Shown: one piece after another, positions 23,787 through 60,779 of the stretch
How the letters are laid out: each line of letters begins with the position of its first letter
Numbering within the stretch: position 1 is the stretch's first letter
Assembly: GCA_051530055.1 (NCBI GenBank)
Contig: CM121342.1
Coordinates: forward strand, 10,431,480 to 10,495,479
Source: Neoechinorhynchus agilis
Taxonomy: Eukaryota; Animalia; Acanthocephala
Length of the DNA stretch: 64,000 nt
Reading direction: 5' to 3'
Translations under genes and position numbers: made by a program
The notes under the pieces: model-generated
The model's database searches: none
Told to the model about the DNA's origin: nothing
The model's input: only the letters and a program-made list of their open reading frames with translations

Positions 23787-23788
23787 AA

Positions 23789-23804
23789 TGGCGACGAGGG
23801 TGGG
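23789..23804 (+). promoter_or_regulatory. Primer binding site of Gypsy A, complementary to tRNA-Ser(GCT)
   Basis: TGGCGACGAGGGTGGG lies 2 nt after the LTR end. It differs by one base from the complement of the metazoan tRNA-Ser(GCT) 3' end as I recall it (TGGCGACGAGGATGGG). Confidence 0.75.
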
Positions 23805-31679: not shown

Positions 31680-32060
31680 CCCCCATCATCCTTTTCGTCC
31701 TTCGTCCCAATTTGTCCAGGAGAGTGAGCGCTGACGGTCCCAAGTCTCCATACGCTTCCACGGCGAAAGGGACGAAATAATAGGTCCTTAAAAGCTCTCT
31801 GTATTTTGTACGTTTTCGGACCTCAGCTACGACCGCTGAACCTCCAGGGCTCTTTTTTGAAAACTGAAAATTACTAGGGGCAAGCGTGCCCACGCAAGTC
31901 GCATCCCATAAAAGAGGTTTCCCCTCCCGCCATGGAAAAACCGTGACACCGTCAGGTCGCTTGCTGTCTAGGCGGCACAAGTTACTTGGCTCTAAAATAT
32001 TGGGCACGTGGACGGAATCTAGGGCTCTACTCAAATTGAGTTTAATTCTGAGTGTCTTGG
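31680..32060 (-). mobile_element. CRE-like non-LTR fragment (RLE endonuclease)
   Basis: [47 protein letters not shown]...FVPFAVEAYG. Cut by the LTR of element C. Confidence 0.8.
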
Positions 32061-32498
32061 AAACCTGCCTCTGGACTATCGAAAACAGTCAGAACAAAAA
32101 GCGAGACACGATGTAACAGCCAAGCCCAGAGAATTTTTTCCGAATGAGGAGGTATGGCTAAAACGAAATGATACAGAAAAATGGACTAAGGCACGAGTGT
32201 TGCATAGATCAAACTGGTCATCGTACAGAGTCCGAAATAACTCTGTCATCGTAAAGGCTCATAGTGACCATCAATTGACCATTCTAACAATCAGAGAGAA
32301 AAAGACAAGAAGAATCAAACAACAACACAGAACAGCGCATCCAACGAAGTTGGAAGTAGTGTCGAAATCGCAGTCGAGCGACGAAGAGAGAGGCAAAGGT
32401 GTCGAACCATTGTTGCGTCGCAGTCAAAGAGTTCGTAAACCCCCGAAAAGATTTCAGGATTTCATAATGAACTTTAAAACAATAGGGAAAGGGAGGAA

Positions 32499-32668
32499 TG
32501 TGACATACGTCACATGCGTTAAATGTGACCATTCGTCACGTCCGTTACAAGGTTGTGTGTGGTTGATATAAGTGCGTTTTTGGTTTGTAGTTGTGTGTTG
32601 ATCAATAAAATACACATACTATTCGATACGGTATGCAGGCAGATCAATCGCAGTATGAGGATTCGACA
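32499..32668 (+). repeat. 3' LTR of Gypsy A (170 bp)
   Basis: tgtgacatacg...attcgaca, preceded by a polypurine tract. Confidence 0.9.
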
Positions 32669-32999
32669 AGCGTTTTAAGACCAAAATTTTAAAAATCGCT
32701 ACGATCTTCAATAATAAAACTGCGCGGCTTTAGAACTTCTCAGTCTTCTTTTAAGAATCAACGAGACTGTTCCAGTGATCAAAGGAAAAGGTTTTTTAAT
32801 GTTACTGGCAAGCCGGGTCTTTTGATTAAGATTATTACATCCTTTCCTCAGCTTTTTTGGCAAGAAGCCACACCGATTTCCTACATCAGAGGAGTGATTG
32901 AAAGAGATCGATGTGGCTTCATGCCAAAAAAAGTAGAGGAAGGGATGTAATAATCTGAGAAACGTTCTTGTTCGAACCATTTCGCAACTTTAAACTCAA

Positions 33000-34170
33000 A
33001 ATTGGTAGATACTAAAAACACAAGCCAATCGTCGAATGAAATAATTTAGAACCTCTTACGTAACTGTAATTATTTTTACGAACTATTGTTTTGATTTTTT
33101 CAAAACTGCGGCAGTTCTAAAAAAAATTAAATTTAAATTTACTAATTCAATAATCACCACAAGCACAATACAGCGGCCATTCTCTTGGCCCTTTCGATCA
33201 AAAAATTTAAGGCAATAAGTCGATTGCGTACAAACAAACAATATCAGCAAATCAACCATTTTTCAAAAGAAACAAATTGTTCATAAATAAGCCGCCACTT
33301 TCGAAAACCTTGCTGAACGAGCACTTTAAATCCGTAAAATGCTTTAGTGAAACTCCAATGTTAAGAAATTTCACTCACTTCATCTGCATCAAAAGCTACA
33401 GCAATCGCTACCTTACTCTTTATCTCTCACAGGCTCTCTACACTACCCCAATCTAGAATTCATCGCCCAATGCTGGCGTCCGTCGTCCTCCTGCCTCTCA
33501 TCCTCTTTGTACCGACTTGATTGTATGATGGAGCTCATAAACTCCACAAATTAACACAATTTCTCAATTGCAGGGGATTTCAATAAACTATTGCTTCTTC
33601 TTTCCCTCTCCGAGTTGCGTCAACTTATTGATTTCTCAACTCGTATTGACGCTCACCTCGACAAATTGTTCACAAATATCGACGCCTACTCATCCGCCTT
33701 CACTCATTAAATTTTTTACACTGCAAATCATCAATCCGACTCCTAAATAGATATGAATATCTATAATTTCTGTATTTTCAATTTTTTTTTAATATCTGAT
33801 TTTGCGAACTTTCAGATTGTCATACAGTTTTCTATTTGGTTACTTTTCTTTACATTCACCACCTCCCACCAAATTCCAGCTTTTGTCCTTCCTCGACCGT
33901 CGCCATCACGCTGGCAGCATTGCCCCGTTGTACTGCCAGCGAGATATTTTGTCGAAGAAATAAGCCTGCTCTTGAGTCTCCGGTTGCCTCTCTCAATTTC
34001 TTCGAGAGATCCTTGAGCAGAGAGAGTGCCGAGCTGCCGAGCGCTCCATACGTCTTAATACCAAATGTAATCTTGATAAAGTGGACTCTGAAAACATAAA
34101 TGACCCTTCCTTGACCATGTCCTCCCCAACCTTGATCATAAAAAATTCACAAACTTCGGCAATAACGTAT
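33000..34170 (+). mobile_element. CR1/L2-group LINE fragments upstream of RPS2 (mirrored at ~57950-59120)
   Basis: STPTHPP and NDPSL motifs are shared with 7061-7350 and ~52940-53303. Confidence 0.6.
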
Positions 34171-34202
34171 TTAATCACAAACTACGCCACTTTTCTTTTG
34201 AG

Positions 34203-34210
34203 TTCTTTCT
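34203..34210 (+). promoter_or_regulatory. Candidate TCT (5'TOP) initiator of RPS2 (mirror at 57910-57917)
   Basis: TTCTTTCT matches the YYCTTTYY ribosomal-protein core promoter motif. It sits in a pyrimidine-rich tract ~55 nt upstream of the likely ATG. Confidence 0.4.
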
Positions 34211-34259
34211 CGGCTACTGCGGCACGATGTTGTTCGCGTTTACATTTTCGAGCGAGATA

Positions 34260-35093
34260 ATGGATCAGCCCCAAACTGCAGTTCCGCTTGGATCTTCACA
34301 GCCATCTCGTCGCGGTGGATTTGGTACCCGTGGGGGTAGAGGAGGTTTTCGAGGAGGTGCAGGCAGACGGCCTGGAGGTCGTCAGCAGCAGGAGAAGAAA
34401 CCTTGGGTTCCGGTTACTAAACTTGGACGTCTAGTTAAGGAGCAGAAGATTAGATCTCTCGAGGAAATATATTTGCATTCTTTACCAATAAAAGAGCCAC
34501 AAATCGTTGATGAGCTTCTGCCTTCGATTCGCGACGAAGTACTAAAAATTATGCCTGTTCAGAAACAAACTTGTGCGGGCCAACGAACTCGATTTAAAGC
34601 GATCGTAGTTATTGGAGATGGGAACGGTCACATTGGCCTCGGGATAAAATGTTCAAAAGAAGTGGCAACCGCGATTCGTGGCGCAATAATTCTGGCCAAA
34701 TTATCGGTTGTTCCTGTTCGTCGTGGATATTGGGGCAACAAAATTGGTGATCCGCATACTGTGCCATGCAAATTATCGGCGAAATGTGGAAGCGTTCTCG
34801 TTCGATTGATTCCGGCACCCCGAGGAACTGGACTCGTCTGTGCACCCGTTCCCAAGAAACTTCTTGAAATGGCAGGAGTAGAAGATTGTTGGACAAAGTC
34901 AAAAGGATCCACATGTACGCTCGCTAATTTTGCCAAGGCGACCTTTAATGCAATGGCGAACACTTATGGATTCTTGACACCGGATTTGTGGGACGATTCG
35001 ATCTACAGTGCAACGCCGTACGATGTGCATTCAGAATTGTTGCGTACTCCGGCACTCACCGCTACCGCGAGCTCTGGCTATGGTGGCCTTTAA
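34260..35093 (+). CDS. RPS2: 40S ribosomal protein S2 (uS5), intronless
   Basis: RGG-rich N-terminus, [73 protein letters not shown] and TPDLW. An in-frame upstream ATG at 34227 is possible. Confidence 0.97.
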
Positions 35094-35463
35094 GAATTTG
35101 ATTTTAAGTAAGAAAAAGTTGGAGGGCTGCCTGGAATTTGTGGCTGTTATTGCGCAATTCTAATTTTTAAATAGGAATTTGCATTTGTAAAAAACATTAT
35201 CTGAGTTTTTTGTTCAGGTGCTTTTGTACTAAGATATCGAACTTATTTTTGCGTCGGTGAAAAACCTCTTAAATACCGCTTTTTGTCCTTTGCAGTACAA
35301 GAATATATTGTATTGAGAGATTTGTCGATTATTTTTGTTTTCAGTCTTCCTCACCGTTTTCGATCCTCATATGCTTATAATTTTCGCATAATTTTGTCTT
35401 GAATTATTATCGCTCAAATTGCGATCTTTGTTTTTAAAGATTATTCATGGATTTTATTCACTA

Positions 35464-35725
35464 ATCACCGTCGTTCTTTGATCTAAAACGTTCAATCCGG
35501 CTGATATATTCAATGTGACCCTTGATTTCCATTTCCGGATTAGTTACAGTCACAAATCGTGGTTGGAAGTTCAAACTTGTAAGATATTTAAAGATTAGCT
35601 CAGAAATCAAGGAAAAGGTTTCTGCATTTAACCAACAAAATTCATCGGGTAAAAGTTAATTGTTTCATATCCTTGGCAATTTAAGCATAGTTTGAACGGA
35701 TTTATAAACTAAGGAATCCATGTCG
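35464..35725 (+). repeat. Inner inverted-repeat segment (partner 50981-51243)
   Basis: Reverse complement of 50981-51243, with roughly ten substitutions or small indels over ~262 bp. Confidence 0.92.
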
Positions 35726-36031
35726 GGATGGATTGGTACTGTAGTGCTAACGACGCAATGTGGATTCAATTTTTGTTCTTAGTTTATGGCTTACGATAGT
35801 TGAGGTAAACGTATTATAATTTGAAAAATATTTCAGAGGTACTTTTGAAACCCGATCATTTAAAGCTTCACTTACTTGTTCTAATTTTATGTAGTTTTAA
35901 AGGTGGAACATTTTGTCCTTCTACAAAACGTTTGTTAAATGTTTTTGAATAATTTTCGTCGTCTAGATCGCTATGTCAGAGATCGATTTATTGAGATCTC
36001 AAGATGGATAGTAGTATAATATTCCGTATAC

Positions 36032-39000
36032 TTATTCTATAACTGGTATCCTTTTATTGATGTGTTGAAAATGTTTGAGCTCCGGTGTAAGATTGCGACT
36101 TACACACCGACCTCCCATCAGGATCCGAGGTGCATAACACAAACATCGTCGATGTCTACACAGCATTCCATATGACTGGCAATCGAAATCGATACGACAT
36201 CTTCGATTACTTTTAAAGACCTTTTGAATGCACTTTCCTTTGTATAATATGAACCTTTGCTTGCACACACATCGATTTCTTTCACAAATCATATGAGGCT
36301 TCAAACAATCGCGCCTAGTTAAGCATTTTAAAGTGGTTAAGTCGTCGCCGGGAATGCAGTATCCTCGATAGAAAACTGAATTTCTGGGACATTTACAATG
36401 GTTGCGCATGCAGACCAATCCTTGATCTTTCCCACAGTCCGAGTCTCTACTACATTCATGGTGGTCACTTGGTCCTGTTCCACCAGATCCAGGAATGCAA
36501 ACTCCACGATAAAATACGTCACCAGGTTTGCACACACATTTCCCTTGTTTGCAGATAAAGTTATTCTTGGAATCACAATCTCTGTTACGAAGACATTCCG
36601 GGGCAGATATACGGTTTTGACATTTTAGGTTTTCCGGCAGCTCTCTATTGGCACACTGACAACGACCAGCAATGCATTTGAATCCAAACGAAACTTTACA
36701 TTGGCTATCGGAATTGCACAACTTTAAGTATCCACCATCTATTTGTAACGAGATAATGCAACGATTAAAATGGAGAACTTGGCCTTCCAAGCATGGCTTC
36801 GATTTTGTCTCAACGCAGAACTTCTTTGCGAGACATTGATACTTTAACCAAAACAATATCCTGTCAAGGTTAATACAGGCACCGTTCCAAAACATTCCAT
36901 TCGGACCACAAGTACATATTCCTCCAGAGCATTTCAAATTCAAATATTTATTACAATCTTCGTTTGTTCTGCAGCCCTCAAAGAAGCCACCAGCCTGCAA
37001 CTGTTTCTGGCATAGACCGTTCAAAAATTTCGAATTTCGATCGCATTGACACAGCCCCCAAAAGCATAAAAGTCCGAGTTTACGATCACAATCAGCATGA
37101 GAAACGCAGGCATGGAAGTATGGATGTACGAGTGCTTTCAATCCAAGTATGCATCTCTTTTCTTCCTCTACGTATCCAACAGCGCAGCTACAACGATTAT
37201 GTATACACAAAATGTTCGAACTCATGTCACAATCGGTATTCTTTTTACAAGAACTTCCAAGTGCGCTTCCAGGACGTTGAATGGGTATGCAAAATGAACA
37301 CCATGGCGACATTGTAAGTCCTTCTTTGCAAATACAACTTCCAGACAATCGATCACAAACAAAACCATTTCCTTTGTCGCATGTATTTTCCTTGTTACAA
37401 TCGTGTTCTAAGCAGGCTAACGAAACAAAGTTAACGAATCATTTTCTCTACCTTTGGGCACACATTTGTTTATTTTGAATATATAGCCACGACGGCACCT
37501 ACATTTTCCGTCAGTACATTGCAAACCAGAGTTCACACCACATTCTTTTGTTTTCTCACATGATTCGAGGAATTGGTTGTCTTCATGTGCATCTATGTTA
37601 TTACAACAATCGAGGATTTATGACAAATGCTAATCAATCGCAAACCAGGATATTTAACACATCTTCCTTCGAACCAAATTCGATTTTGACGACATCTACA
37701 CTTTCCATCAGAGCACTGAAGGCCGTAAATTCGATTGCACTGTGAATCGTTGTTGCATGGCAGCAACACACCCTCAGAGGATTCCTCTGCATGAAACGTT
37801 TTTCATGAATTCAATTAAAAGATAGAGATTACCTTTCAAGAAGATACAACGACCACGTTTCCATATCTTATCAGGGCGACATTTGCATCGACCATATACA
37901 CAATAAAGTCCGATGTTTTGGTTACATTCGAAGTTTCGAATGCACTGTTTCAATAGTCCGTCACCAAGCGACTCGTCTGAAAACCATCAGCGCATAGAAA
38001 AACGTTCAATATGAATCAATCAAACCGTCTATAGTACAGTACGACCCATTCCATTTGCTTCTTCCAACGCACTTGCATCGTCTTTCAATACAGCTTAACC
38101 CGATCGATTGTTTACAGTGCTTTGGAAGTAAACATTCTTTGTTTACGGTTCCTTCTTCTAATCCACCTATGAAAATTCGTGCCAAAAAGTAAATGACAGA
38201 ACATTTGATAGAACCTTCATACGAAACACACTTATAATCCTTCCAGATTTTATCTTCGGAGCAAACACAAAGTCCATTGCGACAGAACAATCCGGCAGAT
38301 GTGTCGCATTGGGTATTAGAGACGCAAGGCCTCAGTAATCCGTTTTCGTCTAATGAAAACCGCCATGACCAGAGCAAATTATCCAACTGCATTTCATACC
38401 TGAATGGGAAACACAACGATACTTTTTCCAATAAGTCCCCGGTTCACACATGCAGCGTCCGTTCTGACAGGTAAGATGAGCAATAACGTTACAATCGTTA
38501 TTACGTTGACATGGACTAAGAATTCCATTGAAATCTCCACCTAAGGATAAAGACAAAATTTATGAATAGTACAACACTTTAATGAAAACGTTTATGTGCG
38601 AAGGCAAACACAAAATTCAATTTATCAATGGCATAATCCTTACCTCTTTTCGGCAGACATCGGTTCCGCTTCCAGTAATGAAAATGTGGACACCGGCATT
38701 TCTCATCTATACACTTAAGACCGGAATTGTGCCCACATTCAATGTCACTGAAGCATTGATCGAGTAAATTACCGGTTGTACCAAGGTCACTTTCTGCGAA
38801 TGAATAATTGAAAAAAGTAGATTCGTATATTGAAGAAATGCTGTTCAGACCTTGATATCTTATACAACGATCTGCTAGCCATATGTGGTTTCGACGGCAT
38901 ATACACTTTCCCCGATGACAAACAAGTCCGTTGAACGAGTTACATTGCACAGTATTTCGACATGGGAGCAATAAACCTCCATTCAATTCATCACCTAGAA

Positions 39001-42000
39001 TTAAAAGTACATGAAAATGTCGCATGTCTTTGAAAGGCTGAACAATATCGCCAAGAGGTATACACCTTCTAAAAGCACGCAACGACCGGATTTCCAAAAC
39101 CGGTCCTTTCCACAAAGACATAGCCCATTCTCACAACGCAAGCCAATGAGATGGTTACACTTGGAATGTCGAGAACACGATTTCAGTATACCTCCACTCA
39201 ACGATTCGTCTATGAATGTTCTCTAAATTCAATTCAACAAAATATATGGTTATACCATCAACAGTGCAAAAAGATCCGTTCCATTTGGACCCGTTGACAC
39301 ATCCGCAGCGTCCTCTTATGCATTTTAAGCCCAACAGCTGATTACACCGTTTGTCACTTGTGCATCCTTTGTTTATCGTTAATTGTTCAACAGCACCTAT
39401 AACGCATTTTTGTGCAAATCAAGTCTAGACCATTCTGATGTTAAACATCATCCAGGGATCTACACCTTTGGTTTTTCAAGTATTTATTGTCAGGGCAAAT
39501 GCAAAGGCCGAAACGGCATTAAAGTCCGAAAATCTTGTCACACTGGCAACCAGATTCACAAAATTTTAGTATGCCATGACCTTCTAAAAACCGAGAACTA
39601 AAACTTTCAAGCATATTGTTCCAATCATATGTTGACGAAAATTAGTAGGGCTCACAACGGTACACAAGCCAGTACATTTTCGGCTTACAGATGCATCGTC
39701 CGTCTCGACAAGACCAGCGAATTCTTTGCAATCAGTATGTAACTTACAAGATCCAAGTATACCACCAAACCCTGGGTCCAAAGAAGCTACACGAGTTACG
39801 CACGCAAAAATAAAAATACCGCGACAATCGCTCCGAAACGACAAACTTCTCAAATTCAGGAATATGTAGCAGAAATGCAATTAAAAATAACGTACGGAAC
39901 GATTCAATGAGGTCAAGAAAATCACTCACTATTTTTAGGGCTGCATTTATGCTTGCGCCAACGTTGCAGTGGTGGGCAACGGCATTTATCGTTACGGCAA
40001 CGCAATCCAGAATAAGCATTACATTGCTTGGATGACTCACATGAAGTCAGAAATCCACCACCAATATCAGAACCGGTTTCTATTTGGAAAAATGTAATTT
40101 CTAATTTTTCACAATGCTAATCAATCGCAAACCAGGATATTTAACACATCTTCCTTCGAACCAAATTCGATTTTGACGACATCTACACTTTCCATCAGAG
40201 CACTGAAGGCCGTAAATTCGATTGCACTGTGAATCGTTGTTGCATGGCAGCAACACACCCTCAGAGGATTCCTCTGCATGAAACGTTTTTCATGAATTCA
40301 ATTAAAAGATAGAGATTACCTTTCAAGAAGATACAACGACCACGTTTCCATATCTTATCAGGGCGACATTTGCATCGACCATATACACAATAAAGTCCGA
40401 TGTTTTGGTTACATTCGAAGTTTCGAATGCACTGTTTCAATAGTCCGTCACCAAGCGACTCGTCTGAAAACCATCAGCGCATAGAAAAACGTTCAATATG
40501 AATCAATCAAACCGTCTATAGTACAGTACGACCCATTCCATTTGCTTCTTCCAACGCACTTGCATCGTCTTTCAATACAGCTTAACCCGATCGATTGTTT
40601 ACAGTGCTTTGGAAGTAAACATTCTTTGTTTACGGTTCCTTCTTCTAATCCACCTATGAAAATTCGTGCCAAAAAGTAAATGACAGAACATTTGATAGAA
40701 CCTTCATACGAAACACAGTTATAATCCTTCCAGATTTTATCTTCGGAGCAAACACAAAGTCCATTGCGACAGAACAATCCGGCAGATGTGTCGCATTGGG
40801 TATTAGAGACGCAAGGCCTCAGTAATCCGTTTTCGTCTAATGAAAACCGCCATGACCAGAGCAAATTATCCAACTGCATTTCATACCTGAATGGGAAACA
40901 CAACGATACTTTTTCCAATAAGTCCCCGGTTCACACATGCAGCGTCCGTTCTGACAGGTAAGATGAGCAATAACGTTACAATCGTTATTACGTTGACATG
41001 GACTAAGAATTCCATTGAAATCTCCACCTAAGGATAAAGACAAAATTTATGAATAGTACCACTTTAATGAAAACGTTTATGTGCGAAGGCAAACACAAAA
41101 TTCAATTTATCAATGGCATAATCCTTACCTCTTTTCGGCAGACATCGGTTCCGCTTCCAGTAATGAAAATGTGGACACCGGCATTTCTCATCTATACACT
41201 TAAGACCGGAATTGTGCCCACATTCAATGTCACTGAAGCATTGATCGAGTAAATTACCGGTTGTACCAAGGTCACTTTCTGCGAATGAATAATTGAAAAA
41301 AGTAGATTCGTATATTGAAGAAATGCTGTTCAGACCTTGATATCTTATACAACGATCTGCTAGCCATATGTGGTTTCGACGGCATATACACTTTCCCCGA
41401 TGACAAACAAGTCCGTGGAACGAGTTACATTGCACAGTATTTCGACATGGGAGCAATAAACCTCCATTCAATTCATCACCTAGAATTAAAAGTACATGAA
41501 AATGTCGCATGTCAAAAACATATAGGACACTTCATGCCTTCGAGAGGAGAGCAACGTCCCGATTTCCATATATAATTCTTAGGACAAACACAGCGGCCGA
41601 AAAGACAGTACAATCCAACTTTAACATTGCAGTTAAGGTTCGATGAACAGGGCTTTAGAAGTCCGCCGGCCGACGATTCGTCTATAAATCGAAGTTTTTT
41701 TTAATTATACCAATGACAGTTCAGAATAGTACCGTCAATTGTACAGTAGAAGCCGTTCCACTTACTGTGTCGGACGCACTTACACCGACCTCGGATGCAT
41801 GTAAGTCCCACTACTTGATTACATTCTTCAGGTTTTAGACATTTCTGATCGAAACTTCCATCTTCCAAAGCACCTTCGAAATTTTCCACGATGGTGAGGT
41901 GTCTATAAACGTTTTCCCAAACCTTCCAGGGATAGACATTTGTTCTGTTTCCAATACTTATCGTCCGGGCATACACAAATTCCATGGTTACAAATAAGTC

Positions 42001-48000: not shown

Positions 48001-50540
48001 CGGCCGAAAAGACAGTACAATCCAACTTTAACATTGCAGTTAAGGTTCGATGAACAGGGCTTTAGAAGTCCGCCGGCCGACGATTCGTCTATAAATCGAA
48101 GTTTTTTTTAATTATACCAATGACAGTTCAGAATAGTACCGTCAATTGTACAGTAGAAGCCGTTCCACTTTACTGTGTCGGGCGCACTTACACCGACCTC
48201 GGATGCATGTAAGTCCCACTACTTGATTACATTCTTCAGGTTTTAGACATTTCTGATCGAAACTTCCATCTTCCAAAGCACCTTCGAAATTTTCCACGAT
48301 GGTGAGGTGTCTATAAACGTTTTCCCAAACCTTCCAGGGATAGACATTTGTTCTGTTTCCAATACTTATCGTCCGGGCATACACAAATTCCATGGTGACA
48401 AATAAGTCCAATAATCGCGTTGCATTGTTCATTAAACTGGCATGGTTTCAACACATCTCCCTCACCTCCTTTTCGAGGATAAATAAGCGATGTAACATTT
48501 TTGTGAACCTCACCTTCGTAAGGGACGCATCTATAAATGTTCCAGTAAGTCCTAGGTTTACAGATGCAACGGCCGCCTCTACACTTGAGACCAGCAATAG
48601 TTTTGCAATCACTGTTAGCAATACAAGGCTGCAGTACACCCGCCGATCCTTCGTCTGGATGAAAAGCATGTAAGAGATTGTCAACGTAATTCAATATTGG
48701 CTTCTATAAAACGAATGTTCGCCAATTCGCATGAAAAGTAAGTGCTTTTTTTTGCGAACTGCATTCGACCTTCGCGGCTATTAATTTTACTAACGTTTCT
48801 TTGGAACGCATCTATTTCCTTGCCAATGATGGAAAGGTACGCAACGGCATTTTCCATTAATGCACTTAAGCCCAAGTCCCATTTTACAGTGCGTTGAGTT
48901 CACGCAGGGCGACAGAAGTGTGCCACCACCTCCTCCTTTGGTATCTAAAAACAATTTCACATCATTGAGATGACCAATACTTCCTCTAATGATTTACCTG
49001 GGTATTTCACACACCGACCGTTGTACCACACGTAATTTTTACGGCATCTACACTTTCCCTTCGATGCAGCGCAAGCCGTGGATCCAGTTGCAATGTGAGT
49101 TTTCGGTACATGGTCCGAGAAGTTCTCCCGACGATCCATCATCTTGCATCATAAAGGGTTTGTGTTAGAGTCCATATTTCAGTTTTGAAACATGGCACAA
49201 AATTGTCTACGATCAAAATATTCATACCTTCGAGAGGAGAGCAACGTCCCGATTTCCAATATATAATCCTTAGGACAAACACAGCGGCCGAAAAGACAGT
49301 ACAATCCAACTTTAAAATTGCAGTTAAGGTTCGATGAACAGGGCTTTAGAAGTCCGCCGGCCGACGATTCGTCTATAAATCGAAGTTTTTTTAATTATAC
49401 CAATGACAGTTCAGAATAGTACCGTCAATTGTACAGTAGAAGCCGTTCCACTTACTGTGTCGGGCGCACTTACACCGACCTCGGATGCATGTAAGTCCCA
49501 CTACTTGATTACATTCTTCAGGTTTTAGACATTTCTGATCGAAACTTCCATCTTCCAAAGCACCTTCGAAATTTTCCACGATGGTGAGGTGTCTATAAAC
49601 GTTTTCCCAAACCTTCCAGGGATAGACATTTGTTCTGTTTCCAATACTTATCGTCCGGGCATACACAAATTCCACTGTGACAAATAAGTCCAATAATCGC
49701 GTTGCATTGTTCATTAAACTGGCATGGTTTCAACACATCTCCCTCACCTCCTTTTCGAGGATAAATAAGCGATGTAACATTTTTGTGAACCTCACCTTCG
49801 TAAGGGACGCATCTATAAATGTTCCAGTAAGTCCTAGGTTTACAGATGCAACGGCCGGCTCTACACTTGAGACCAGCAATAGTTTTGCAATCACTGTTAG
49901 CAATACAAGGCTGCAGTACACCCGCCGATCCTTCGTCTGGATGAAAAGCATGTAAGAGATTGTCAACGTAATTCAATATTGGCTTCTATAAAACGAATGT
50001 TCGCCAATTCGCATGAAAAGTAAGTGCTTTTTTTGCGAACTGCATTCGACCTTCGTGGCTATTAATTTTACTAACGTTTTTTGCAATAGTGCCCATTCCA
50101 TTTGTATTTTGCCTTGCATTTGCATTTATTTTTTCTGCATTGTAGGCCTAGACTTGTGCGACATTCTTGGTCTGCTGAGCATTTTGTGTTGTGCCCATGT
50201 TCTCCTTCCGTTTCTCCTTTTTTTGCTTATTTAAATATGTATACATTTTTTTCTTACCTATGCAGCGGTTTCGAAACCATTGAAATCCGTCCCTGCACGC
50301 ACACAATCCTTTTCGGCAGTACAAGCCCCTGAATATATCACAATCGTTACTCGTTTCGCATTGACACGGTATAATTGTTCCAAATATTTCAATATAGTTT
50401 TCTCTTTGGGATAGGTGACCTATTTTAAACTTTGCATTCGCTGCTTTTATTTGTTGTTTACCTCCAAAGATTTCTGCGATTAGTGAACATAGCAAAATTG
50501 CCCACGAGTTGCTAACGAAATTTGTTTGAAGGCAATTGAA
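36032..50540 (-). CDS. Giant multi-exon cysteine-rich repeat protein, paralogue 2 (may be partly pseudogenised)
   Basis: Hydrophobic WAILLCSLIAEIFG, a 42-nt intron (50420-50461), a PCQC module, ~60 single-module exons in repeating a-f order, then a terminal exon (36032-~37420). One module has a frameshift (~39707) and one a TAA (39519-39521). Start codon not resolved. Confidence 0.75.
36471..37121 (-). repeat. 651-bp tract near-identical to 10542-11192
   Basis: Partner of the tract in paralogue 1. Confidence 0.92.
37626..39028. repeat. 1.4-kb direct duplication, copy 1 (copy 2 at 40113-41513)
   Basis: Mirror ORFs 38006/40493 and 38350/40837 (offset 2487) have near-identical translations. 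Covers about seven modules. Confidence 0.93.
40113..41513. repeat. 1.4-kb direct duplication, copy 2
   Basis: Partner of 37626-39028. Confidence 0.93.
41530..50078. repeat. Tandem array 2: ~6.7 units of ~1282 bp, six exons each
   Basis: Equivalent positions at 41701, 42984, 44267, 45548, 46827, ~48109 and 49391. Units are almost identical to one another but clearly different from array 1 units. Confidence 0.97.
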
Positions 50541-50980
50541 TTAAGCCTAGCCTTGATCATACCACATTTTTGTGCACTTGAAGTTATATTCTTAGCGCAA
50601 ATCTATCTTTTGTGTGTGGTTTTTGTTTTATGCTCTCTATGTGGTTGTAAATTAAACCTTTATGTGTCACCAGCGGTGAATGGCGGTTTTAGCATCAGGT
50701 GTGCTTGTGGGATTTGAAATAAATTTTGCAGGTGATAAATTTGAATGGATGCCTTGCTACGATTTTTGGGCACTTGTTCTCAGCTGTTAGTAAGACTACA
50801 TATTTAATTTGAACATAAAAAATGTAGTTATAATTACTTGTACAATTCCATGAGTGCGCCACGCAGCGAATCAGAATTCGTTTTATCGACAGCGGAGATA
50901 TTGTACCTACCATATCTTTCAAGTTTCCTTTTATTTTGAAATGAAAACTTCTTAATTATCTGAACTAAAAGGTACCATTT

Positions 50981-51243: not shown

Positions 51244-51410
51244 AAGTGCTTCTGATTAAATCTAAAAGGATTGTAGATTTTAATATTGCGTTTAATAACC
51301 AATTATTATTACTAACTCACAAATTGTATTTACACGAATTCCCAGAATTAATGACAATAATACGTTTTACTTATTCCATCGATAGAAAGTCCTTCGGGAT
51401 AATAAAATTC

Positions 51411-51494
51411 CACTTTCGGTGAGAATAATCCCGGTCATTACATATTTTATTTATTCGAAATATGTAATGGCCGGGATTATTCTCACCGAAAGTG
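51411..51494. repeat. Near-perfect 84-bp hairpin (MITE-like)
   Basis: 37-bp arms (51411-51447 and 51458-51494) with one mismatch and a 10-nt loop. Confidence 0.9.
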
Positions 51495-51589
51495 TAGTTT
51501 TACTTATTGTTTTGGTCTTCTCCCGGTTAATATTTTTTTTCAATAAAAACGTTTCAAACCTCGTCGGGTTCATCATATAACCCGAGTTA

Positions 51590-54500
51590 AGTGACGTTTT
51601 GATTGTTTGTTGAAAATCTCATAAATGCGCTGGGGAGCGGAGAAGATCAATCTGGAGATTTTAGAGGGCTCTTCTATGAAACGTTTCAAGGCGACGGATT
51701 TGTGATTAGGATAGATTGCAAAGAGCGGACGAAGGGACTCCTAAATGGCGGAAGTGTTTTAAGAGGTCAAATTTAAAGATGTTGCGTTTGGGCTAAAATG
51801 TAATGTGCGAGTTCCATTTCACATTTGATTGAAATAGGCGACAAAAATTCTGACGGAGGTGACTCGCCGGATATCATTTGGAAGATCCGGGGGAGCAACT
51901 CAACGCACTTAGAGAAGTTCAGGTAATGTTTGTGATTGGTGTAGAAATCTTTGATGTGGATGATTTCGTTAGATGGTAAGGAGAGGGAGAGTTCGGAGGG
52001 TGATTGTGTGATGAGGCTGAAATCGTCGGCATATAAGAAAAGTTTGGATTGAGAGGAGATAGCTTTAAGTTTGCCTAAAAAATATTTAAAAAGAAGTGGT
52101 GATAGGACGGCACCCTGAGGTACGCCTTTTGTGAGGGATAGGGTGATCGAGGAGTTAGCACTGTAGTGAATGTATTGTTCGCGATTGTAAAAATAAGAGG
52201 CCAGCCAGTGGATATGCCACGAGTTTAGACCGAAATCGGATAAGGTCTGAAGAAGTAGTGAGTGGCCTGCAGAGTCCAATGCTTTCGACAAGTCCATTTG
52301 AATGAGCCGAGTGACATGAGATTGATTACTAAACGCGTCGTAAACGCAAAGTAGGCAGCAATAGTTTTTGAGAAGTGGAAAAGGGGGGTTTTGTGGTATT
52401 TTTCGATAATTTTTCTTGAATGATTCCGTAGAAATCGGAAGTCCATTTTTTAGGAAGAAGAATTACTTTAGCAGTTTCAGGCACAAGAGTTTGATGGCTG
52501 TGATTTAGAATGAAGGCTAGAGGGTCTACTAGTTTGCGGCTGATGCACCGAAGAGCCCAGTTTGGATTTTAGATTGAGGAAACGAATTTCAAGGTAACTT
52601 CTTGAGGTGTTGGAGGATTTCATATGACGAAACTAATGGGAGTATTGGAGAGTTGACAGAAGTATCACTTGTAGCAGTGATAGTTTGTGTGGAGTCTGAG
52701 GTGGGACAATGGCTATAATTTCAGTCATAGCAGAGGTTCTGATTGATGGAGTCTAGAGTATGTTTCAGTATAAACTATTGCAAGTTTGATAAGTGATCAG
52801 GGTTGCGTAGACCAAGAGAATCTTTGACGGCACGCCACCATGTTGAATTGTCACCTGAACGAATATTCGAGGAAAGGAAGTTTTTGCGGACCGCAAGTAT
52901 TTTAGCTTAACCGGCGCATGGAATTTCAAGATGGGTGTTGTCCATGGTGGGCCACGCTTGGATATTCGAATTTTATGATCATGGCTAGTGTCATTTTTGT
53001 TGTCAGAGTAAAGGATGCGAATCATCGAATTGAGAAATTTGATAAAATTGTAGATGCTATGATCCCGTTTATCTTAGAAGGGTAGGTGAGGTGATTTCTG
53101 ACGCCGAGGTGGAGTGGCGAGAGTGATAAGGGCAAAAGATCGGTGAGATTTCGCAGGGCAGGGGAGTTTAGAGGCGGATGGGTAGGCGTCGGTATTTGTG
53201 AATACTTTGTCGAGGTGAGCGTCAAGACGTGTTGGGAAGTCATTAGCTGACGCAACTCAGAGAAGGGTGAGATAGGAAAGTTTATTGAAGTCCCCTGTAC
53301 CAAGGGAATGGTGTGATTCGGCGGAGTTTATGAGCTGCATCATGGAATCAGGTTGACATAAGGAGGACGAGAGACAGAAGGGAAGTAGACGCCAACAATT
53401 GCGAATTCTGTGAGGCCATTTCTCAGAGGAGCTGAGAAATGGAGTGCGATGAATTCTAGATCGGGGTTTTGCAGAGAGCCAATCCTATGGGAGATGAAGA
53501 GTATGGTAGTGATTGTCGTGGGAAAGATGGCAGAATTGCTGTTGAGGAATAGTCTATTTCACCTAAGATGATAACGTCAGCTTTTTGAGGTAGGTGAAAT
53601 GAGTGATACTTCATCTAGTTTAGAGCACGCTTCAAGAGTTAAGATAGAATACTATGGGGAAGGGAATTTTTGGGGCGAATTGGTGTGCATGAGCTAAGAT
53701 TGGATGAGCCGATTTATGGTATATTTGTGTAAGGATAAAATGATAACTTTTAACTTATTTCGGGAGGGAAACCGTCTTTAATGTGGAAGGACTAGGTGAT
53801 TGTCCTTGGTGGTTTTTCGAACGCTAAAGGAGGTGCACATAATTAAAGAAGTTGGGCAGACGATACGAAGAATAAGGTGGCGGTGATGTGCATTAGAGGC
53901 GCAAGGGTCTGCAATAGGGGATTCAGGGAAGAGTGCATGATACGATGGGTCGAGTTCAGATTGGCAAGGAATGATGGACGGGGAAGGCGCATCGTGACAG
54001 AAATGAGTCGGAGAGTTGATTGTTTATGTTGGTATTTATGTCGACTTTATACATTTATAGTTCTTTGTCCCTCCTTTTGCTCGTCTTCCTACTCGTTCAG
54101 ATGTTTCTTCGAACTTTTGCTTAACTTTAACTTTCTTAGTAGTTGCTGGAGGTGAATCGCTTCGTTTTCCCTATCGCTACCTTTTATAAGTCTTAATATC
54201 ATATATCTACACCGTAATTTGAAAATCGTGAAGTACTCTAGGCTGCATATCCTCTGAGAGTGGCATCAAATCGCTAAAAAACGTTGAAGTATTCGCAGTA
54301 TTTTGAACGCCACTCGTTTTCTAAAAAATCTTCGTTTGAGTTTGGCATACTGTTGGTATCTATCAAAACCGCATTCTCCTTCGTGGCCGCTTCATTAGCA
54401 GATTTCTGTAGAACGTAAGCTTGCTTCATAGAATCCCATTTGGAAACTTTGTCTGCCTATTTGAGCCGTTAGATTTATTCTCTGCGCTTCTTGATTTCGG

Positions 54501-54650
54501 CAAACTGTTAACTTCTAATAGCTTTATTCTTTAACTGTGCTCACGGCTTCAATCAACGAGCCCTTTAGAGTATCAGTGACTTGAGGAAAGAACTGCTTTA
54601 GTACGACATCGGTAAGAGCAGAATGTTTAGCCGAGTCCCGTAAGCAAGAC
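51590..54650 (-). mobile_element. Near full-length degraded CR1/L2-group LINE (ORF1, APE, RT, C-terminus)
   Basis: RT DLSKALDS...GVPQGAVLSPLLF...YADDF at 51773-52297, APE remnants ~53000-53800, and an ORF1-like region homologous to 62000-62600 and 63600-64000. Confidence 0.8.
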
Positions 54651-54659
54651 AGCTCATCG

Positions 54660-55700
54660 CTGCGCATTCGTCCTACAACTACTCAAAGTTTAAGTTCGAA
54701 GGTGTAAATTATGACCAAGTCCACTTTCCCCAGTATTAGCAGAGCTATACATGAGATCATGCGAGAAGAAACACGTGTCGAAATTGAGCGGTGTGGAGCT
54801 ATGGATACGATATGTAGATGATACTTTCATTATCCTTGATCCCAGCACAAGTTCAACCGAAAAGCTCGAAAAGTAATTGAATAGCTGTCACCAGAACATA
54901 CAATGGACAATTGAAGAAGATTAAAATGATAGTTTGCCATTCTTGGACGTATGCGTAAGGCGGAAATATAACAGTGGTTCATGACATCGGTCTATAGAAA
55001 ACAGGGGGTTCCGCATATGGTGGTGCCATGGATGTCATCTCAGCCGGTTAAATACAAATTGGCAAGGGTCAGGTTGATGCTCATAAGGGCATTTAGATTT
55101 TGTTCCGATAGAATGAGCCTCAAAGATGAACTGGAATTGGATTTATAGTAGCAGTTTAAAAGGGAGTGAATATCCAAAGAGATACATTGACAAACGTAAG
55201 AAGGAAGCGCAAAAGAAGCACTTCATTGAAGCACCATTCATCAGCGGTCCATTGAACTCAAAAATGGTAGCTGTAATCAAAAAGATTGATAAGGACAGGG
55301 AGTTCACGATATATAATAAGAAAGGCAGAACTCTCCAAACAGTACTTCGGCCGAAGAATGAGGATGGAATATCTAGTTGTGTCTACAAGATTCCATGTTT
55401 CAACTCCAATCTTTCATATGCGGGACAAACGAACAATCTAAAAAGAAGGATTGTCGAGCACCTAAAAGCAGCTTCAAAGAAGATTGAATTCGGCAATAGT
55501 GTCCCATATTATTAGCAATGGGAACAAGGTTAATTTTGATGGTACTCAGACTCTTGCGCGGAGTGATGTAAGCCGCGACAGGGTGAGGATGGATGCCATC
55601 ATGGTAAAAAAAGGATACGTTCGTGGGCAACAAAGCGGATTTAATTAAATCAAAGTGGGGATTGCAGGTTGGATGATGAATTCGTGGAGGCTGCTAATCT
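54660..55700 (+). mobile_element. Penelope-like element remnant
   Basis: WIRYVDDTFII, IQWTIEE, LPFLDV and GIY-YIG CVYKIPC...YAGQTNNLKRRIVEH. Stops and frameshifts. Confidence 0.8.
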
Positions 55701-55859
55701 TTGGTTTGGAAATTCAGGGAGCGAGCAGGTCCTCGCCAATGGTTGCAAACAATCAGTTTGGACTAACCCCTGGTAGCGAGAATTCAATACTCTTTAATTT
55801 CAGATTCTCGTGACCTGGTGAACCAAACTCGATTGGCGGCAGTCTCTACAAGAGAATCG

Positions 55860-56520
55860 GGTGCTTAGCTCAACGCTATACAAATCGCTTCTGTGGGTAC
55901 CCTTCTCTCCGACGAGACAGTAAGGATTGTAGTGTCCCTGAGATTTGGGGTACCGATGTGCACATCCCATCGCTGCCGCTGAGGAGCGACCTTGGAACCA
56001 TCGGGACGCCATGGCCTGGTCTGTCTGCAATCAGGCGGAAGGTACTCACGACACGCCGAAGTGAACGCAATTCTTAGTCGTGCCCTGAATAATGTGAATG
56101 GGCCAAACATCTTAGAGCCAAGCAATCTTTGCCGACTCGATGGCCGTAGACCGGACGGTGTCACAGTATTACAGTGGCGAGAAGGAACATGCCTTCTATG
56201 GGACGCTACGGTAATGGACACAATCGCAGCCACAACATAAAATTCGCTACCATTAAACCAGGGGAGCAGCAACCGCCGCTGAGGAACGCAAAAGGCCAAA
56301 ATACAGGGACCTGAGTCGAAATCATCATTTTGTTCCCTTTGGCGTCGAGACATTTGAGTCGTTTGGTACGGCGGAGCAGTACCTGATCAATCAATTGTCT
56401 AAGAGATTGAGACGAATCACTGGCGATCCGAAATAAAGAGCATTCCTCCTACAAAACACGAGCCTAGCTGTGCAACGAAGCAACGCTGCATTCGTCCTTT
56501 CGACCGTTACAGCGGGACGG
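55860..56520 (+). mobile_element. CRE-like non-LTR 3' fragment (zinc knuckle plus RLE)
   Basis: GTLLSDETVRIVVSLRFG..C..H.C...HGLVC...RH.EVN, RPDGVTV..W..G..LLWDATV, FVPFGVET and SLAVQRSNAA. Confidence 0.82.
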
Positions 56521-57026
56521 CAGCTGAGTGATCCAAAGCGGTGGTGTGAATGCTTTCTGCTCCGAGAATCACTTATTGACAATAAGCACACATTCTCAAA
56601 TATCCAAAGAAATTAAACGAAGTGTGCATTGCAATATCTAAAATAAATTCACAGGAGTAAGACACTTGACCGAGAGTTTATTGAGTTTTCCTTTGACCTT
56701 TATAAAACAAAGATCGCAATTTGAGCGATAATAATTCAAGACAAAATTATGCGAAAATTATTAGCATATGAGGATCGAAAACGGTGAGGAAGACTGAAAA
56801 CAAAAATAATCGACAAATCTCTCAATACAATATATTCTTGTACTGCAAAGGACAAAAAGCGGTATTTAAGAGGTTTTTCACCGACGCAAGAATAAGTTCG
56901 ATATCTTAGTACAAAAGCACCTGAACAAAAAACTCAGATAATGTTTTTTACAAAAATTAGAATTGCGCAATAACAGCCACAAATTCCAGGCAGCCCTCCA
57001 ACTTTTTCTTACTTAAAATCAAATTC

Positions 57027-57860
57027 TTAAAGGCCACCATAGCCAGAGCTCGCGGTAGCGGTGAGTGCCGGAGTACGCAACAATTCTGAATGCACATCGT
57101 ACGGCGTTGCACTGTAGATCGAATCGTCCCACAAATCCGGTGTCAAGAATCCATAAGTGTTCGCCATTGCATTAAAGGTCGCCTTGGCAAAATTAGCGAG
57201 CGTACATGTGGATCCTTTTGACTTTGTCCAACAATCTTCTACTCCTGCCATTTCAAGAAGTTTCTTGGGAACGGGTGCACAGACGAGTCCAGTTCCTCGG
57301 GGTGCCGGAATCAATCGAACGAGAACGCTTCCACATTTCGCCGATAATTTGCATGGCACAGTATGCGGATCACCAATTTTGTTGCCCCAATATCCACGAC
57401 GAACAGGAACAACCGATAATTTGGCCAGAATTATTGCGCCACGAATCGCGGTTGCCACTTCTTTTGAACATTTTATCCCGAGGCCAATGTGACCGTTCCC
57501 ATCTCCAATAACTACGATCGCTTTAAATCGAGTTCGTTGGCCCGCACAAGTTTGTTTCTGAACAGGCATAATTTTTAGTACTTCGTCGCGAATCGAAGGC
57601 AGAAGCTCATCAACGATTTGTGGCTCTTTTATTGGTAAAGAATGCAAATATATTTCCTCGAGAGATCTAATCTTCTGCTCCTTAACTAGACGTCCAAGTT
57701 TAGTAACCGGAACCCAAGGTTTCTTCTCCTGCTGCTGACGACCTCCAGGCCGTCTGCCTGCACCTCCTCGAAAACCTCCTCTACCCCCACGGGTACCAAA
57801 TCCACCGCGACGAGATGGCTGTGAAGATCCAAGCGGAACTGCAGTTTGGGGCTGATCCAT
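57027..57860 (-). CDS. RPS2: 40S ribosomal protein S2 (uS5), second copy
   Basis: Translation identical to 34260-35093. Confidence 0.97.
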
Positions 57861-59451
57861 TATCTCGCTCGAAAATGTAAACGCGAACAACATCGTGCCG
57901 CAGTAGCCGAGAAAGAACTCAAAAGAAAAGTGGCGTAGTTTGTGATTAAATACGTTATTGCCGAAGTTTGTGAATTTTTTATGATCAAGGTTGGGGAGGA
58001 CATGGTCAAGGAAGGGTCATTTATGTTTTCAGAGTCCACTTTATCAAGATTACATTTGGTATTAAGACGTATGGAGCGCTCGGCAGCTCGGCACTCTCTC
58101 TGCTCAAGGATCTCTCGAAGAAATTGAGAGAGGCAACCGGAGACTCAAGAGCAGGCTTATTTCTTCGACAAAATATCTCGCTGGCAGTACAACGGGGCAA
58201 TGCTGCCAGCGTGATGGCGACGGTCGAGGAAGGACAAAAGCTGGAATTTGGTGGGAGGTGGTGAATGTAAAGAAAAGTAACCAAATAGAAAACTGTATGA
58301 CAATCTGAAAGTTCGCAAAATCAGATATTAAAAAAAAATTGAAAATACAGAAATTATAGATATTCATATCTATTTAGGAGTCGGATTGATGATTTGCAGT
58401 GTAAAAAATTTAATGAGTGAAGGCGGATGAGTAGGCGTCGATATTTGTGAACAATTTGTCGAGGTGAGCGTCAATACGAGTTGAGAAATCAATAAGTTGA
58501 CGCAACTCGGAGAGGGAAAGAAGAAGCAATAGTTTATTGAAATCCCCTGCAATTGAGAAATTGTGTTAATTTGTGGAGTTTATGAGCTCCATCATACAAT
58601 CAAGTCGGTACAAAGAGGATGAGAGGCAGGAGGACGACGGACGCCAGCATTGGGCGATGAATTCTAGATTGGGGTAGTGTAGAGAGCCTGTGAGAGATAA
58701 AGAGTAAGGTAGCGATTGCTGTAGCTTTTGATGCAGATGAAGTGAGTGAAATTTCTTAACATTGGAGTTTCACTAAAGCATTTTACGGATTTAAAGTGCT
58801 CGTTCAGCAAGGTTTTCGAAAGTGGCGGCTTATTTATGAACAATTTGTTTCTTTTGAAAAATGGTTGATTTGCTGATATTGTTTGTTTGTACGCAATCGA
58901 CTTATTGCCTTAAATTTTTTGATCGAAAGGGCCAAGAGAATGGCCGCTGTATTGTGCTTGTGGTGATTATTGAATTAGTAAATTTAAATTTAATTTTTTT
59001 TAGAACTGCCGCAGTTTTGAAAAAATCAAAACAATAGTTCGTAAAAATAATTACAGTTACGTAAGAGGTTCTAAATTATTTCATTCGACGATTGGCTTGT
59101 GTTTTTAGTATCTACCAATTTTGAGTTTAAAGTTGCGAAATGGTTCGAACAAGAACGTTTCTCAGATTATTACATCCCTTCCTCTACTTTTTTTGGCATG
59201 AAGCCACATCGATCTCTTTCAATCACTCCTCTGATGTAGGAAATCGGTGTGGCTTCTTGCCAAAAAAGCTGAGGAAAGGATGTAATAATCTTAATCAAAA
59301 GACCCGGCTTGCCAGTAACATTAAAAAACCTTTTCCTTTGATCACTGGAACAGTCTCGTTGATTCTTAAAAGAAGACTGAGAAGTTCTAAAGCCGCGCAG
59401 TTTTATTATTGAAGATCGTAGCGATTTTTAAAATTTTGGTCTTAAAACGCT

Positions 59452-60059
59452 TGTCGAATCCTCATACTGCGATTGATCTGCCTGCATACCGTATCGAATA
59501 GTATGTGTATTTTATTGATCAACACACAACTACAAACCAAAAACGCACTTATATCAACCACACACAACCTTGTAACGGACGTGACGAATGGTCACATTTA
59601 ACGCATGTGACGTATGTCACATTCCTCCCTTTCCCTATTGTTTTAAAGTTCATTATGAAATCCTGAAATCTTTTCGGGGGTTTACGAACTCTTTGACTGC
59701 GACGCAACAATGGTTCGACACCTTTGCCTCTCTCTTCGTCGCTCGACTGCGATTTCGACACTACTTCCAACTTCGTTGGATGCGCTGTTCTGTGTTGTTG
59801 TTTGATTCTTCTTGTCTTTTTCTCTCTGATTGTTAGAATGGTCAATTGATGGTCACTATGAGCCTTTACGATGACAGAGTTATTTCGGACTCTGTACGAT
59901 GACCAGTTTGATCTATGCAACACTCGTGCCTTAGTCCATTTTTCTGTATCATTTCGTTTTAGCCATACCTCCTCATTCGGAAAAAATTCTCTGGGCTTGG
60001 CTGTTACATCGTGTCTCGCTTTTTGTTCTGACTGTTTTCGATAGTCCAGAGGCAGGTTT
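59452..60059 (-). mobile_element. Duplicated 3' end of Gypsy A (integrase tail, PPT, 3' LTR at 59452-59621)
   Basis: Mirror of 32061-32668 within the right arm. The adjoining CRE-like fragment (60060-60301) is mirrored too. Confidence 0.9.
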
Positions 60060-60779
60060 CCAAGACACTCAGAATTAAACTCAATTTGAGTAGAGCCCTA
60101 GATTCCGTCCACGTGCCCAATATTTTAGAGCCAAGTAACTTGTGCCGCCTAGACAGCAAGCGACCTGACGGTGTCACGGTTTTTCCATGGCGGGAGGGGA
60201 AACCTCTTTTATGGGATGCGACTTGCGTGGGCACGCTTGCCCCTAATAATTTTCAGTTTTCAAAAAAGAGCCCTGGAGGTTCAGCGGTCGTAGCTGAGGT
60301 CGGCGTGTTTCTGTATGATAAGAGAAATCGTTGTACCCTCAACGATCGATCCTGCGGATGCGTTACTTTGATCGCTCTATCTTTAAGTGTTCGTACAAAT
60401 CTTTCAGCCAATCCATTTGACCGAGGGTGATAGGGTGTGATGCGGTTGTGCCGTATTCCGTTTATATTAATAACACGTTTTATTTGTTAGTGCACAAGGA
60501 GGACCCATCCGCGGCCATCAAGGAAGCTGCCGAACAATCATGACGACAGTTGCAGAATTGGACGAAAAGGAGGAATTTGTGAAAGAATATACAAAATATC
60601 CTTACCAAGAAGGTAGAAAAAGAATTCCCATCCGCTAATGTAATAGATGTTCTCATTGTTGATTTTGGAGCAGATCATAATAACACGTTTTATTTGTTAA
60701 TGCACAAAGAGGACCCATGTACCTTTGGGTCCTCATAAACACTCGAGTTCTGATTGGATACATGAATCTGGCTATTGAC

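Follow-up and report, generated by a model that had tools for sequence, protein, structure and literature searches.

Introduction

A 64-kb stretch of the genome of the acanthocephalan Neoechinorhynchus agilis (GCA_051530055.1, CM121342.1 of 16,375,937 bp, positions ~10,431,480–10,495,479; "the window" in what follows) raises the question of how two identical genes for the ribosomal protein RPS2 (uS5) came to lie there in inverted arms of about 3.6 kb, on either side of a Cys-rich gene with EB modules, and of what has kept these arms alike. In a first-pass annotation of the window the arrangement was taken for a palindrome-like amplicon which doubles the dosage of RPS2 and could invert the DNA enclosed by the arms. 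In the analysis reported here, all structural results of which are drawn from one assembled sequence of one assembly, the left arm was identified as the source and the right arm as a truncated copy of it. The explanation that we consider rather probable as a whole is a real inverted segmental duplication, the right copy of which was later split by transposable element (TE) sequence, with arms kept alike by gene conversion.

Results and Discussion

The Two Arms and Their RPS2 Genes

Comparison of the window with itself by BLAST showed an inverted match of 3,622 alignment columns between a left and a right arm, with an identity of 99.4%, gaps included (Table 1). Base-by-base alignment over ~3.62 kb revealed three substitutions and two indels in total. 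The substitutions were located at L31874/R60246, 55 nt inside the outer edge, at L35248/R56890 and at L35376/R56762 (L, left arm; R, right arm), and the indels comprised one of 18 nt, by which the copies can be told apart, and one of 1 nt at L35435. From 31875 to 35165 the left arm is identical to the right arm without interruption over 3,291 nt, in agreement with the earlier description of the arms as colinear without net indels over 3.3 kb. An origin of the inverted repeat by chance or from low-complexity sequence is ruled out by a 3.6-kb match with >99.9% identity.

At all four arm ends (31819/60301 and, with the inner extension described below, 35735/50972) homology halts abruptly, and the flanks are unrelated and non-allelic. 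No similarity at the protein level was found past the outer arm ends, where the right copy is truncated. As had been noticed before, comparison of the arm flanks showed no target site duplication (TSD) at the outer ends, and none was found around the whole right copy; at the inner junction a possible microhomology of 3–5 nt (GGTAC) was observed.

Both RPS2 open reading frames (ORFs) code for the complete N- and C-terminal Ribosomal_S5 domains of Pfam and are oriented toward the spacer, which confirms the first-pass claim of an intact, intronless, inward-pointing RPS2 in each arm. The arm alignment and the ORFs likewise bear out the palindrome-like structure, an inverted duplication in which the second of the two Cys-rich genes of the window (paralogue 2) is enclosed by two intact copies of RPS2. 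The term "amplicon" overstates the case, since there are just two copies, of which the left one is clearly the source and the right one a truncated derivative. The inverted repeat is best described as an ordinary inverted segmental duplication.

Bdelloid rotifers and the acanthocephalan Pomphorhynchus laevis have uS5/RPS2 proteins with 73–80% identity to the deduced protein. In the protein collection searched, exactly this protein is encoded in GCA_051530055.1 at two loci only, which are the two arms. No third close RPS2 from this assembly was found among 5.8 billion proteins, the next match being a rotifer protein with 73% identity, with the limit that a badly predicted multi-exon gene could escape a protein database. 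Within the window, tblastn detected neither pseudogenes nor additional fragments of RPS2. The genome probably has no RPS2 gene besides the copies in the two arms.

Direction and Mode of Copying

That the right arm was copied from the left one, and not the reverse, follows from a Gypsy-type element and an ORF with a TE domain, both of which extend past 31819 on the left, while the right copy is truncated in the middle of that domain. The Gypsy-type element has the features of the Ty3/Gypsy group, namely direct long terminal repeats (LTRs), a polypurine tract immediately before the 3' LTR and a pol with the order reverse transcriptase (RT)–RNaseH–integrase, together with a TGG... motif behind the 5' LTR. 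The left arm opens inside this element and contains its last ~0.8 kb, consisting of nested TE debris, the polypurine tract and the 3' LTR. The last two were found in both arms, as expected from the first-pass annotation, in which the 3' end of the element ("Gypsy A") had been assigned to each arm. No TSD was found around the LTRs, the flanks ...GGCGT and (T)ATGAG... being unmatched. The 4.4 kb from pol to the 3' LTR contain antisense gag-like and TE ORFs, and the element (23325–32653) is therefore nested or recombinant/rearranged. A second pair of direct repeats, 119 nt long and 97% identical (24153–24271 and 28398–28516), brackets its pol.

The TE domain encoded across the left outer boundary follows the pattern …PNILEPSNLCRLD..RPDG…WDAT…KY..L…FVPF.VE..G…; it gave no Pfam match, and its closest named homologues are N. 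agilis proteins, others being a moth protein and metagenome/transcriptome proteins. In the right copy the domain breaks off at residue 90 of 137; the break coincides with 60301, and unrelated sequence follows. Beyond 31819 the left ORF matches an independent copy of the domain at 56046–56424, and since this copy continues in the same way, the left continuation is the natural one. This independent copy is part of the retroelement-rich insertion described below, and it has the same orientation as a GIY-YIG fragment that precedes it by 0.5 kb. The earlier mention of "LINE debris" (LINE, long interspersed nuclear element) in the arms stands in so far as TE fragments are present there and RT and GIY-YIG fragments of related repeats occur nearby; the LINE label itself is loosely supported, the TE domain that crosses the boundary having no Pfam match.

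An RNA- or TE-mediated origin of the right copy was also considered, in which a read-through transcript from the Gypsy-type element into RPS2 was reverse-transcribed, truncated at the 5' end and inserted, or in which a retroelement nearby carried the segment along by transduction. The Gypsy-type element, its 3' LTR and RPS2 indeed lie on one strand in the source, the copy begins within the element, as expected of a cDNA truncated at its 5' end, RPS2 lacks introns, and retroelements with RT and GIY-YIG domains adjoin the copy. However, no poly(A) tract or TSD marks the ends of the right copy, regardless of whether its extent is set at 3.6 kb or at 3.9 kb with the insertion described below added, and none was found around RPS2 itself. 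The source RPS2 is also intronless, so that the absence of introns is uninformative. We regard this origin as very improbable. The lack of a TSD or poly(A) tract in the copy points to a DNA-level event.

The same kind of evidence bears on the origin of the intronless RPS2 as such. The RPS2 genes of relatives contain introns and span more DNA (5.5 kb for 256 aa in P. laevis and 1,237 bp for 288 aa in Rotaria sordida). No intron-containing parental RPS2 was found among the database proteins of GCA_051530055.1. Around the gene in the window there is neither a poly(A) tail nor a TSD, the 5' and 3' flanks having no word of ≥8 nt in common and the longest run of A being 6 nt, and a retrogene origin is therefore possible but unsupported.

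A Probable Split in the Right Copy

Just beyond the inner end of the left arm lies a 0.27-kb sequence with an inverted counterpart on the right side; between this counterpart and the right arm lie 5.45 kb of retroelement-rich DNA (Table 1). The two members of this extension pair are 95.6% identical, with 11 substitutions and one indel in ~276 nt, and stand in inverted colinear order. Because the pair is colinear and inverted and begins next to the end of the left arm, the simplest reading is that the original duplication measured at least 3.9 kb (31819–35735) and that retroelement sequence entered the right copy later. No other copies of the 0.27-kb sequence were found within the window, whereas the TE families of the window do recur, and several stretches of 51249–56697 have diverged relatives elsewhere in it.

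Repeat-family members with ~75% identity bracket the right arm on both sides (51890–54524 versus 61419–62675 and 63574–63998), and the order and orientation of these families are the same on both sides. Since the same families flank it on either side, the right copy sits inside an old TE cluster. The insertion also contains a near-perfect hairpin (51399–51507, with 45-nt arms and a 10-nt loop), which adjoins the RT fragment and may be a terminal structure of the element to which that fragment belongs; related copies of it occur at 1762–1811 and 6495–6581.

The Spacer and the Cys-Rich Paralogues

The spacer between the arms (35440–56697) measures 21,258 nt and has no counterpart elsewhere in the window, save TE fragments and the 0.27-kb extension pair. 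The earlier claim of a 21-kb spacer holding paralogue 2, a minus-strand EB-module gene, is upheld with the refinement that ~5.45 kb of it is the retroelement insertion, which leaves a unique core of 15.2 kb. The tandem array of paralogue 2 extends over 41531–50083 with a unit of 1,283 bp, and that of paralogue 1 over 11739–20402. As assembled, the spacer has the orientation of paralogue 1, and this orientation is presumably the ancestral one.

Each paralogue comprises ~6.7 tandem units of ~1.29 kb which encode Cys-rich modules. Unit-to-unit identity is 97.6–98% in paralogue 1 and 99.2–99.4% in paralogue 2, and the arrays are ~66% identical to each other. Paralogue 2 further contains a 1.4-kb direct repeat (37616–39028 and 40104–41513) with 99.5% identity, the copies lying ~2.49 kb apart. 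Database gene calls break the EB-module region into several genes.

The Divergence Gradient and Its Cause

The substitutions are distributed very unevenly along the duplicated segment, with 3 in 3,620 nt of the arms (0.08%) against 11 in 276 nt of the extension (4%) (Fisher p = 5.6e-11). Of the five differences within the arms, four are concentrated in the inner 275 nt (p = 1.6e-4); the remaining one is near the outer edge, and the clustering at the edges is significant as well (p = 6e-6). The core thus shows 0% divergence, the inner 275 nt show ~1.5% differences, and in the cut-off 0.27-kb piece the value reaches 4%. As identity is perfect also across 2.4 kb of TE debris and is not confined to RPS2, purifying selection on RPS2 cannot explain it and was rejected as its cause.

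The gradient is apparently the result of arm-to-arm (ectopic) gene conversion, which needs long unbroken homology and reaches the edges least, and which accounts for the data better than a misassembly or a copy made very recently would. Ectopic conversion seems to be visible independently at this locus, in a tract of 654 nt shared by the terminal exons of the EB-module paralogues (10539–11192 and 36468–37121). This conversion-like tract is 99.7% identical between the paralogues, has flanks of 55–65% identity and sharp borders, and lies in direct repeats 26 kb apart. The statement that the arms are more alike than their age predicts is drawn from a gradient and an edge clustering measured within one assembly, in which the assembler may have flattened differences.

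An unlikely alternative explanation for the same data is that 3.6 kb were duplicated in inverted form in a single, very recent event that was followed by no conversion, the 0.27-kb pair being an older unrelated repeat or TE fragment and the 5.45 kb of TE sequence having been present at the target already. It accounts for the near-perfect identity of the arms, for a right arm that is plainly a truncated copy of the left one and for the slight divergence of the LTR pair of the Gypsy-type element, and it is compatible with the diverged TE-family members on both sides of the right arm, which could mark an insertion into an existing cluster. Yet it needs a coincidence, namely that a partner of the extension happened to lie on the correct side of the copy, in the correct orientation and at a distance of only 5.45 kb. 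In addition, the five arm differences are found at the edges and not scattered, as the probabilities given above indicate, and the 0.27-kb sequence has no further copy in the window, whereas the true TE families do recur.

An Assembly Artefact as an Alternative

The N. agilis assembly (46.2 Mb, N50 of 16.4 Mb, three major contigs) was produced with MaSuRCA as a hybrid of Illumina and Oxford Nanopore Technologies (ONT) reads, the ONT reads being derived from a pool of 50 worms; instaGRAAL served for scaffolding and TGS-GapCloser for the closing of gaps (PMC12690905). Hybrid assembly, scaffolding or gap closing of sequences from pooled polymorphic worms might have created a false duplicate of a single RPS2 region or put it in the wrong place. 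The use of a single assembly, the perfect identity of the core, the pooling of worms and the use of instaGRAAL and TGS-GapCloser are all in keeping with such an error, and a precedent is known from the rotifer Adineta vaga, in which palindromes of the first assembly (AV13) were not retrieved in a chromosome-level assembly and are likely artefacts of the scaffolding of phased haplotypes (PMC8494291).

Several observations speak against an artefact. The window is free of gaps, its count of N being 0. The minimum long-read length in the assembly was 5 kb, which exceeds the 3.6 kb of the arms, and reads spanning an arm should therefore exist. The flanks at the four arm ends are unrelated and not allelic, and the copies differ by the 18-nt indel and the edge-clustered variants. 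Finally, a colinear continuation of 96% identity that is broken by TE sequence reflects an evolutionary history and not a false duplication. An artefact as the explanation of the repeat is in our judgement improbable. The AV13 palindromes resemble the present case as a palindromic gene arrangement in the rotifer–acanthocephalan clade; they differ from it in that they were much larger and had been taken as evidence of ameiotic evolution, while the N. agilis repeat is gapless and has non-allelic flanks, a TE insertion and a diverged extension. A haplotype scaffolding artefact of the AV13 type, which should show a join across a gap and allelic similarity running on into the flanks, finds no support, as no N is present and homology stops abruptly at 31819/60301 and 35735/50972.

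Proposed History of the Locus

In the explanation favoured here, a segment of at least 3.9 kb (31819–35735) would have given rise to an inverted copy that was placed ~0.5 kb upstream of the adjacent EB-module gene. The content of this segment would have been the tail of the Gypsy-type element with its nested TE debris, the intronless RPS2 and ~0.6 kb of sequence downstream of RPS2. Afterwards, 5.45 kb of retroelement sequence would have entered the right copy ~350 nt downstream of RPS2, and the 0.27-kb piece severed by this insertion would have drifted to ~4% divergence, while the remaining 3.6-kb arms would have been held near-identical by arm-to-arm conversion, with leftover differences at their edges. 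The outcome would be two identical RPS2 genes, each with the same 2.4-kb upstream region, and identical inverted arms which should let homologous recombination invert the 21-kb segment while no gene is broken. Of this, the sequence itself shows the arrangement of the arms, the direction of copying, the gradient of divergence and the intactness of both genes, and conversion as the source of the gradient, expression from both copies and inversion are inferred.

Several points weigh against this history. No clean TSD marks the 5.45-kb insertion, and the 0.27-kb pair could be an older unrelated repeat. The LTR pair of the Gypsy-type element predates the duplication and yet shows only the few differences listed in Table 1; its divergence is not significantly lower than that of the extension (p = 0.06 for substitutions, p = 0.28 for all events), which makes for an uncomfortable fit. 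As a molecular clock for the duplication versus the extension the LTR pair was discarded, the sites being too few to decide. The spacer is seen in one orientation only, in a single assembled sequence. The structure as a whole is read from a single assembly, and confirmation by reads is needed; hybrid and super-read pipelines could flatten the few differences between near-identical repeats, so that "0 differences in 3.3 kb" may be overstated.

Expected Expression of RPS2 and Possible Inversion of the Spacer

The two RPS2 copies have 2.4 kb of upstream and at least 72 nt of downstream sequence in common, from which equal expression of both is a reasonable expectation, and a doubled dosage of RPS2, as proposed in the first-pass annotation, would be plausible. 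The oligopyrimidine tract CTTTTCTTTT found upstream of each copy is, we assume, of the terminal oligopyrimidine (TOP)/TCT type, like the oligopyrimidine start of metazoan ribosomal-protein mRNAs, and is a candidate for the transcription start of RPS2. A second in-frame ATG (MDQPQ…) follows after 11 codons (34227–34262), and either ATG could be the start.

[quoted passage not shown] High-identity inverted repeats flank the 21-kb segment, as is required of a segment that NAHR can invert.

The inverted repeat of plastids likewise contains genes of the translation apparatus, undergoes copy correction and flanks a segment that occurs in both orientations (flip-flop isomers). It belongs to a multi-copy organellar genome, has arms of 20–25 kb and has been conserved for hundreds of millions of years, in contrast to which the N. 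agilis case is small, young and nuclear, with a recognisable source and a truncated copy.

Closer parallels are found in primates. In their X and Y palindromes, the likeness of the arms is put down to gene conversion from arm to arm, and species can differ by inversions of the spacer (PMC8327919). The human X palindrome P24, with FLNA and EMD in its spacer, resembles the N. agilis structure in having highly identical inverted arms with genes around a unique, gene-bearing spacer, and structural change in primate X palindromes is concentrated in the inner arm/spacer region (PMC8327919), as here, where TE sequence lies at the right arm's inner end. The arms of human X palindromes measure 8–140 kb (PMC8327919), whereas those of N. 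agilis, with 3.6 kb (3.9 kb ancestrally), lie below the catalogued minimum of 8 kb; in its workings the structure is like this class, but its size is smaller. The arm gene in this acanthocephalan is a housekeeping ribosomal protein gene and not a testis-biased family. Conversion is deduced here from one sequence and inversion is an expectation, neither being drawn from a comparison of individuals or species. Whole duplicated genes within inverted repeats are also known from the human inversions HsInv0396 (PABPC1L2A/B) and HsInv0209 (KRTAP5-10/11) (PMC3961182). In human recurrent inversions the breakpoints lie in the stretches of highest identity, and the enclosed segment is reoriented with its genes unbroken; both orientations have been genotyped there (PMC3961182), whereas N. 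agilis is known from one orientation.

The structure belongs to a known class, that of segments flanked by inverted repeats and of X/Y-type palindromes, and reveals no new mechanism. A more far-reaching notion would be an active flip-flop device in the parasite, in which both orientations of the 21-kb segment coexist, the context and expression of the EB-module gene are switched in the manner of phase variation, and conversion shields the genome's only RPS2 gene from decay in a TE-rich region; we consider it extremely unlikely.

Other Features of the Window

The window is unusually dense in retroelements and long tandem arrays, although set in a compact genome of 46 Mb, and a Band_7 gene lies directly past its right end. 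No structured RNAs or tRNAs which might be cargo were detected in the arms or elsewhere by an Rfam gathering search and ARAGORN, and no short-period tandem repeats were found in the 30–62 kb part of the window.

Table 1. Positions of the inverted repeat, its genes and the associated elements in the window
Feature	Position (nt)	Strand	Remarks
Left arm	31819–35439	+	BLAST self-comparison and base-by-base alignment; source copy
Right arm	60301–56698	-	BLAST self-comparison and base-by-base alignment; derived copy, truncated at 60301
18-nt indel	35166–35183	+	Left arm only; 73 nt past RPS2 stop codon; marker distinguishing the copies
RPS2/uS5 coding sequence, left copy	34227–35093	+	288 aa, no intron; Ribosomal_S5 E = 1e-28, Ribosomal_S5_C E = 4e-25
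RPS2/uS5 coding sequence, right copy	57893–57027	-	Identical to left copy; tblastn 100% over 288 aa
Oligopyrimidine tract CTTTTCTTTT	34190–34199	+	27 nt 5' of first ATG; mirror at 57921–57930 (-)
Left inner extension	35459–35735	+	Putative colinear continuation of the old duplication, 19 nt past left arm end
Right inner extension	51248–50972	-	5.45 kb from right arm
Retroelement-rich insertion	51249–56697		5,449 nt; separates right arm from right extension
RVT_1 fragment in insertion	51773–52297	-	Pfam
GIY-YIG (Penelope-like) fragment in insertion	55126–55515	+	E = 8.5e-7, above Pfam cut-off
Unique spacer core with EB-module Cys-rich gene(s), paralogue 2	35736–50971	-	15.2 kb; coding from ~50495 to 36032
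Polypurine tract and 3' LTR of Gypsy-type element	32483–32653	+	Left arm; mirror at 59637–59467 (-)
LTR pair of Gypsy-type element	23325–23477 (5', outside arm); 32499–32653 (3')	+	1 substitution and 2 indels in ~153 nt
Gypsy-type pol ORF (RT–RNaseH–integrase)	25720–28089		Domain order fits Ty3/Gypsy
TE-domain ORF across left outer boundary	31678–32088	-	Truncated mirror at 60032–60301 (+)
Further copies of the TE domain	56046–56424 (+); 5917–6122 (+); 33979–34071 (-)		Mirror of the last at 58049–58141

Experimental Section

The 64-kb window was compared with itself by BLAST, and the two arms thus found were then aligned base by base. Protein domains were assigned with Pfam.

Conclusions

If confirmed by reads, the locus would be a small and clean case of concerted evolution in an acanthocephalan nuclear genome. 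The inverted duplication would have a known source and could be dated, a TE insertion would bound the stretch undergoing conversion, and the neighbouring paralogues would add a conversion tract of their own. RPS2 would be a two-copy gene to which reads multi-map, a point of importance for the annotation of this parasite and for studies of its expression. Populations of N. agilis may be polymorphic for an inversion of the 21-kb segment, which could confuse scaffolding and local estimates of recombination.

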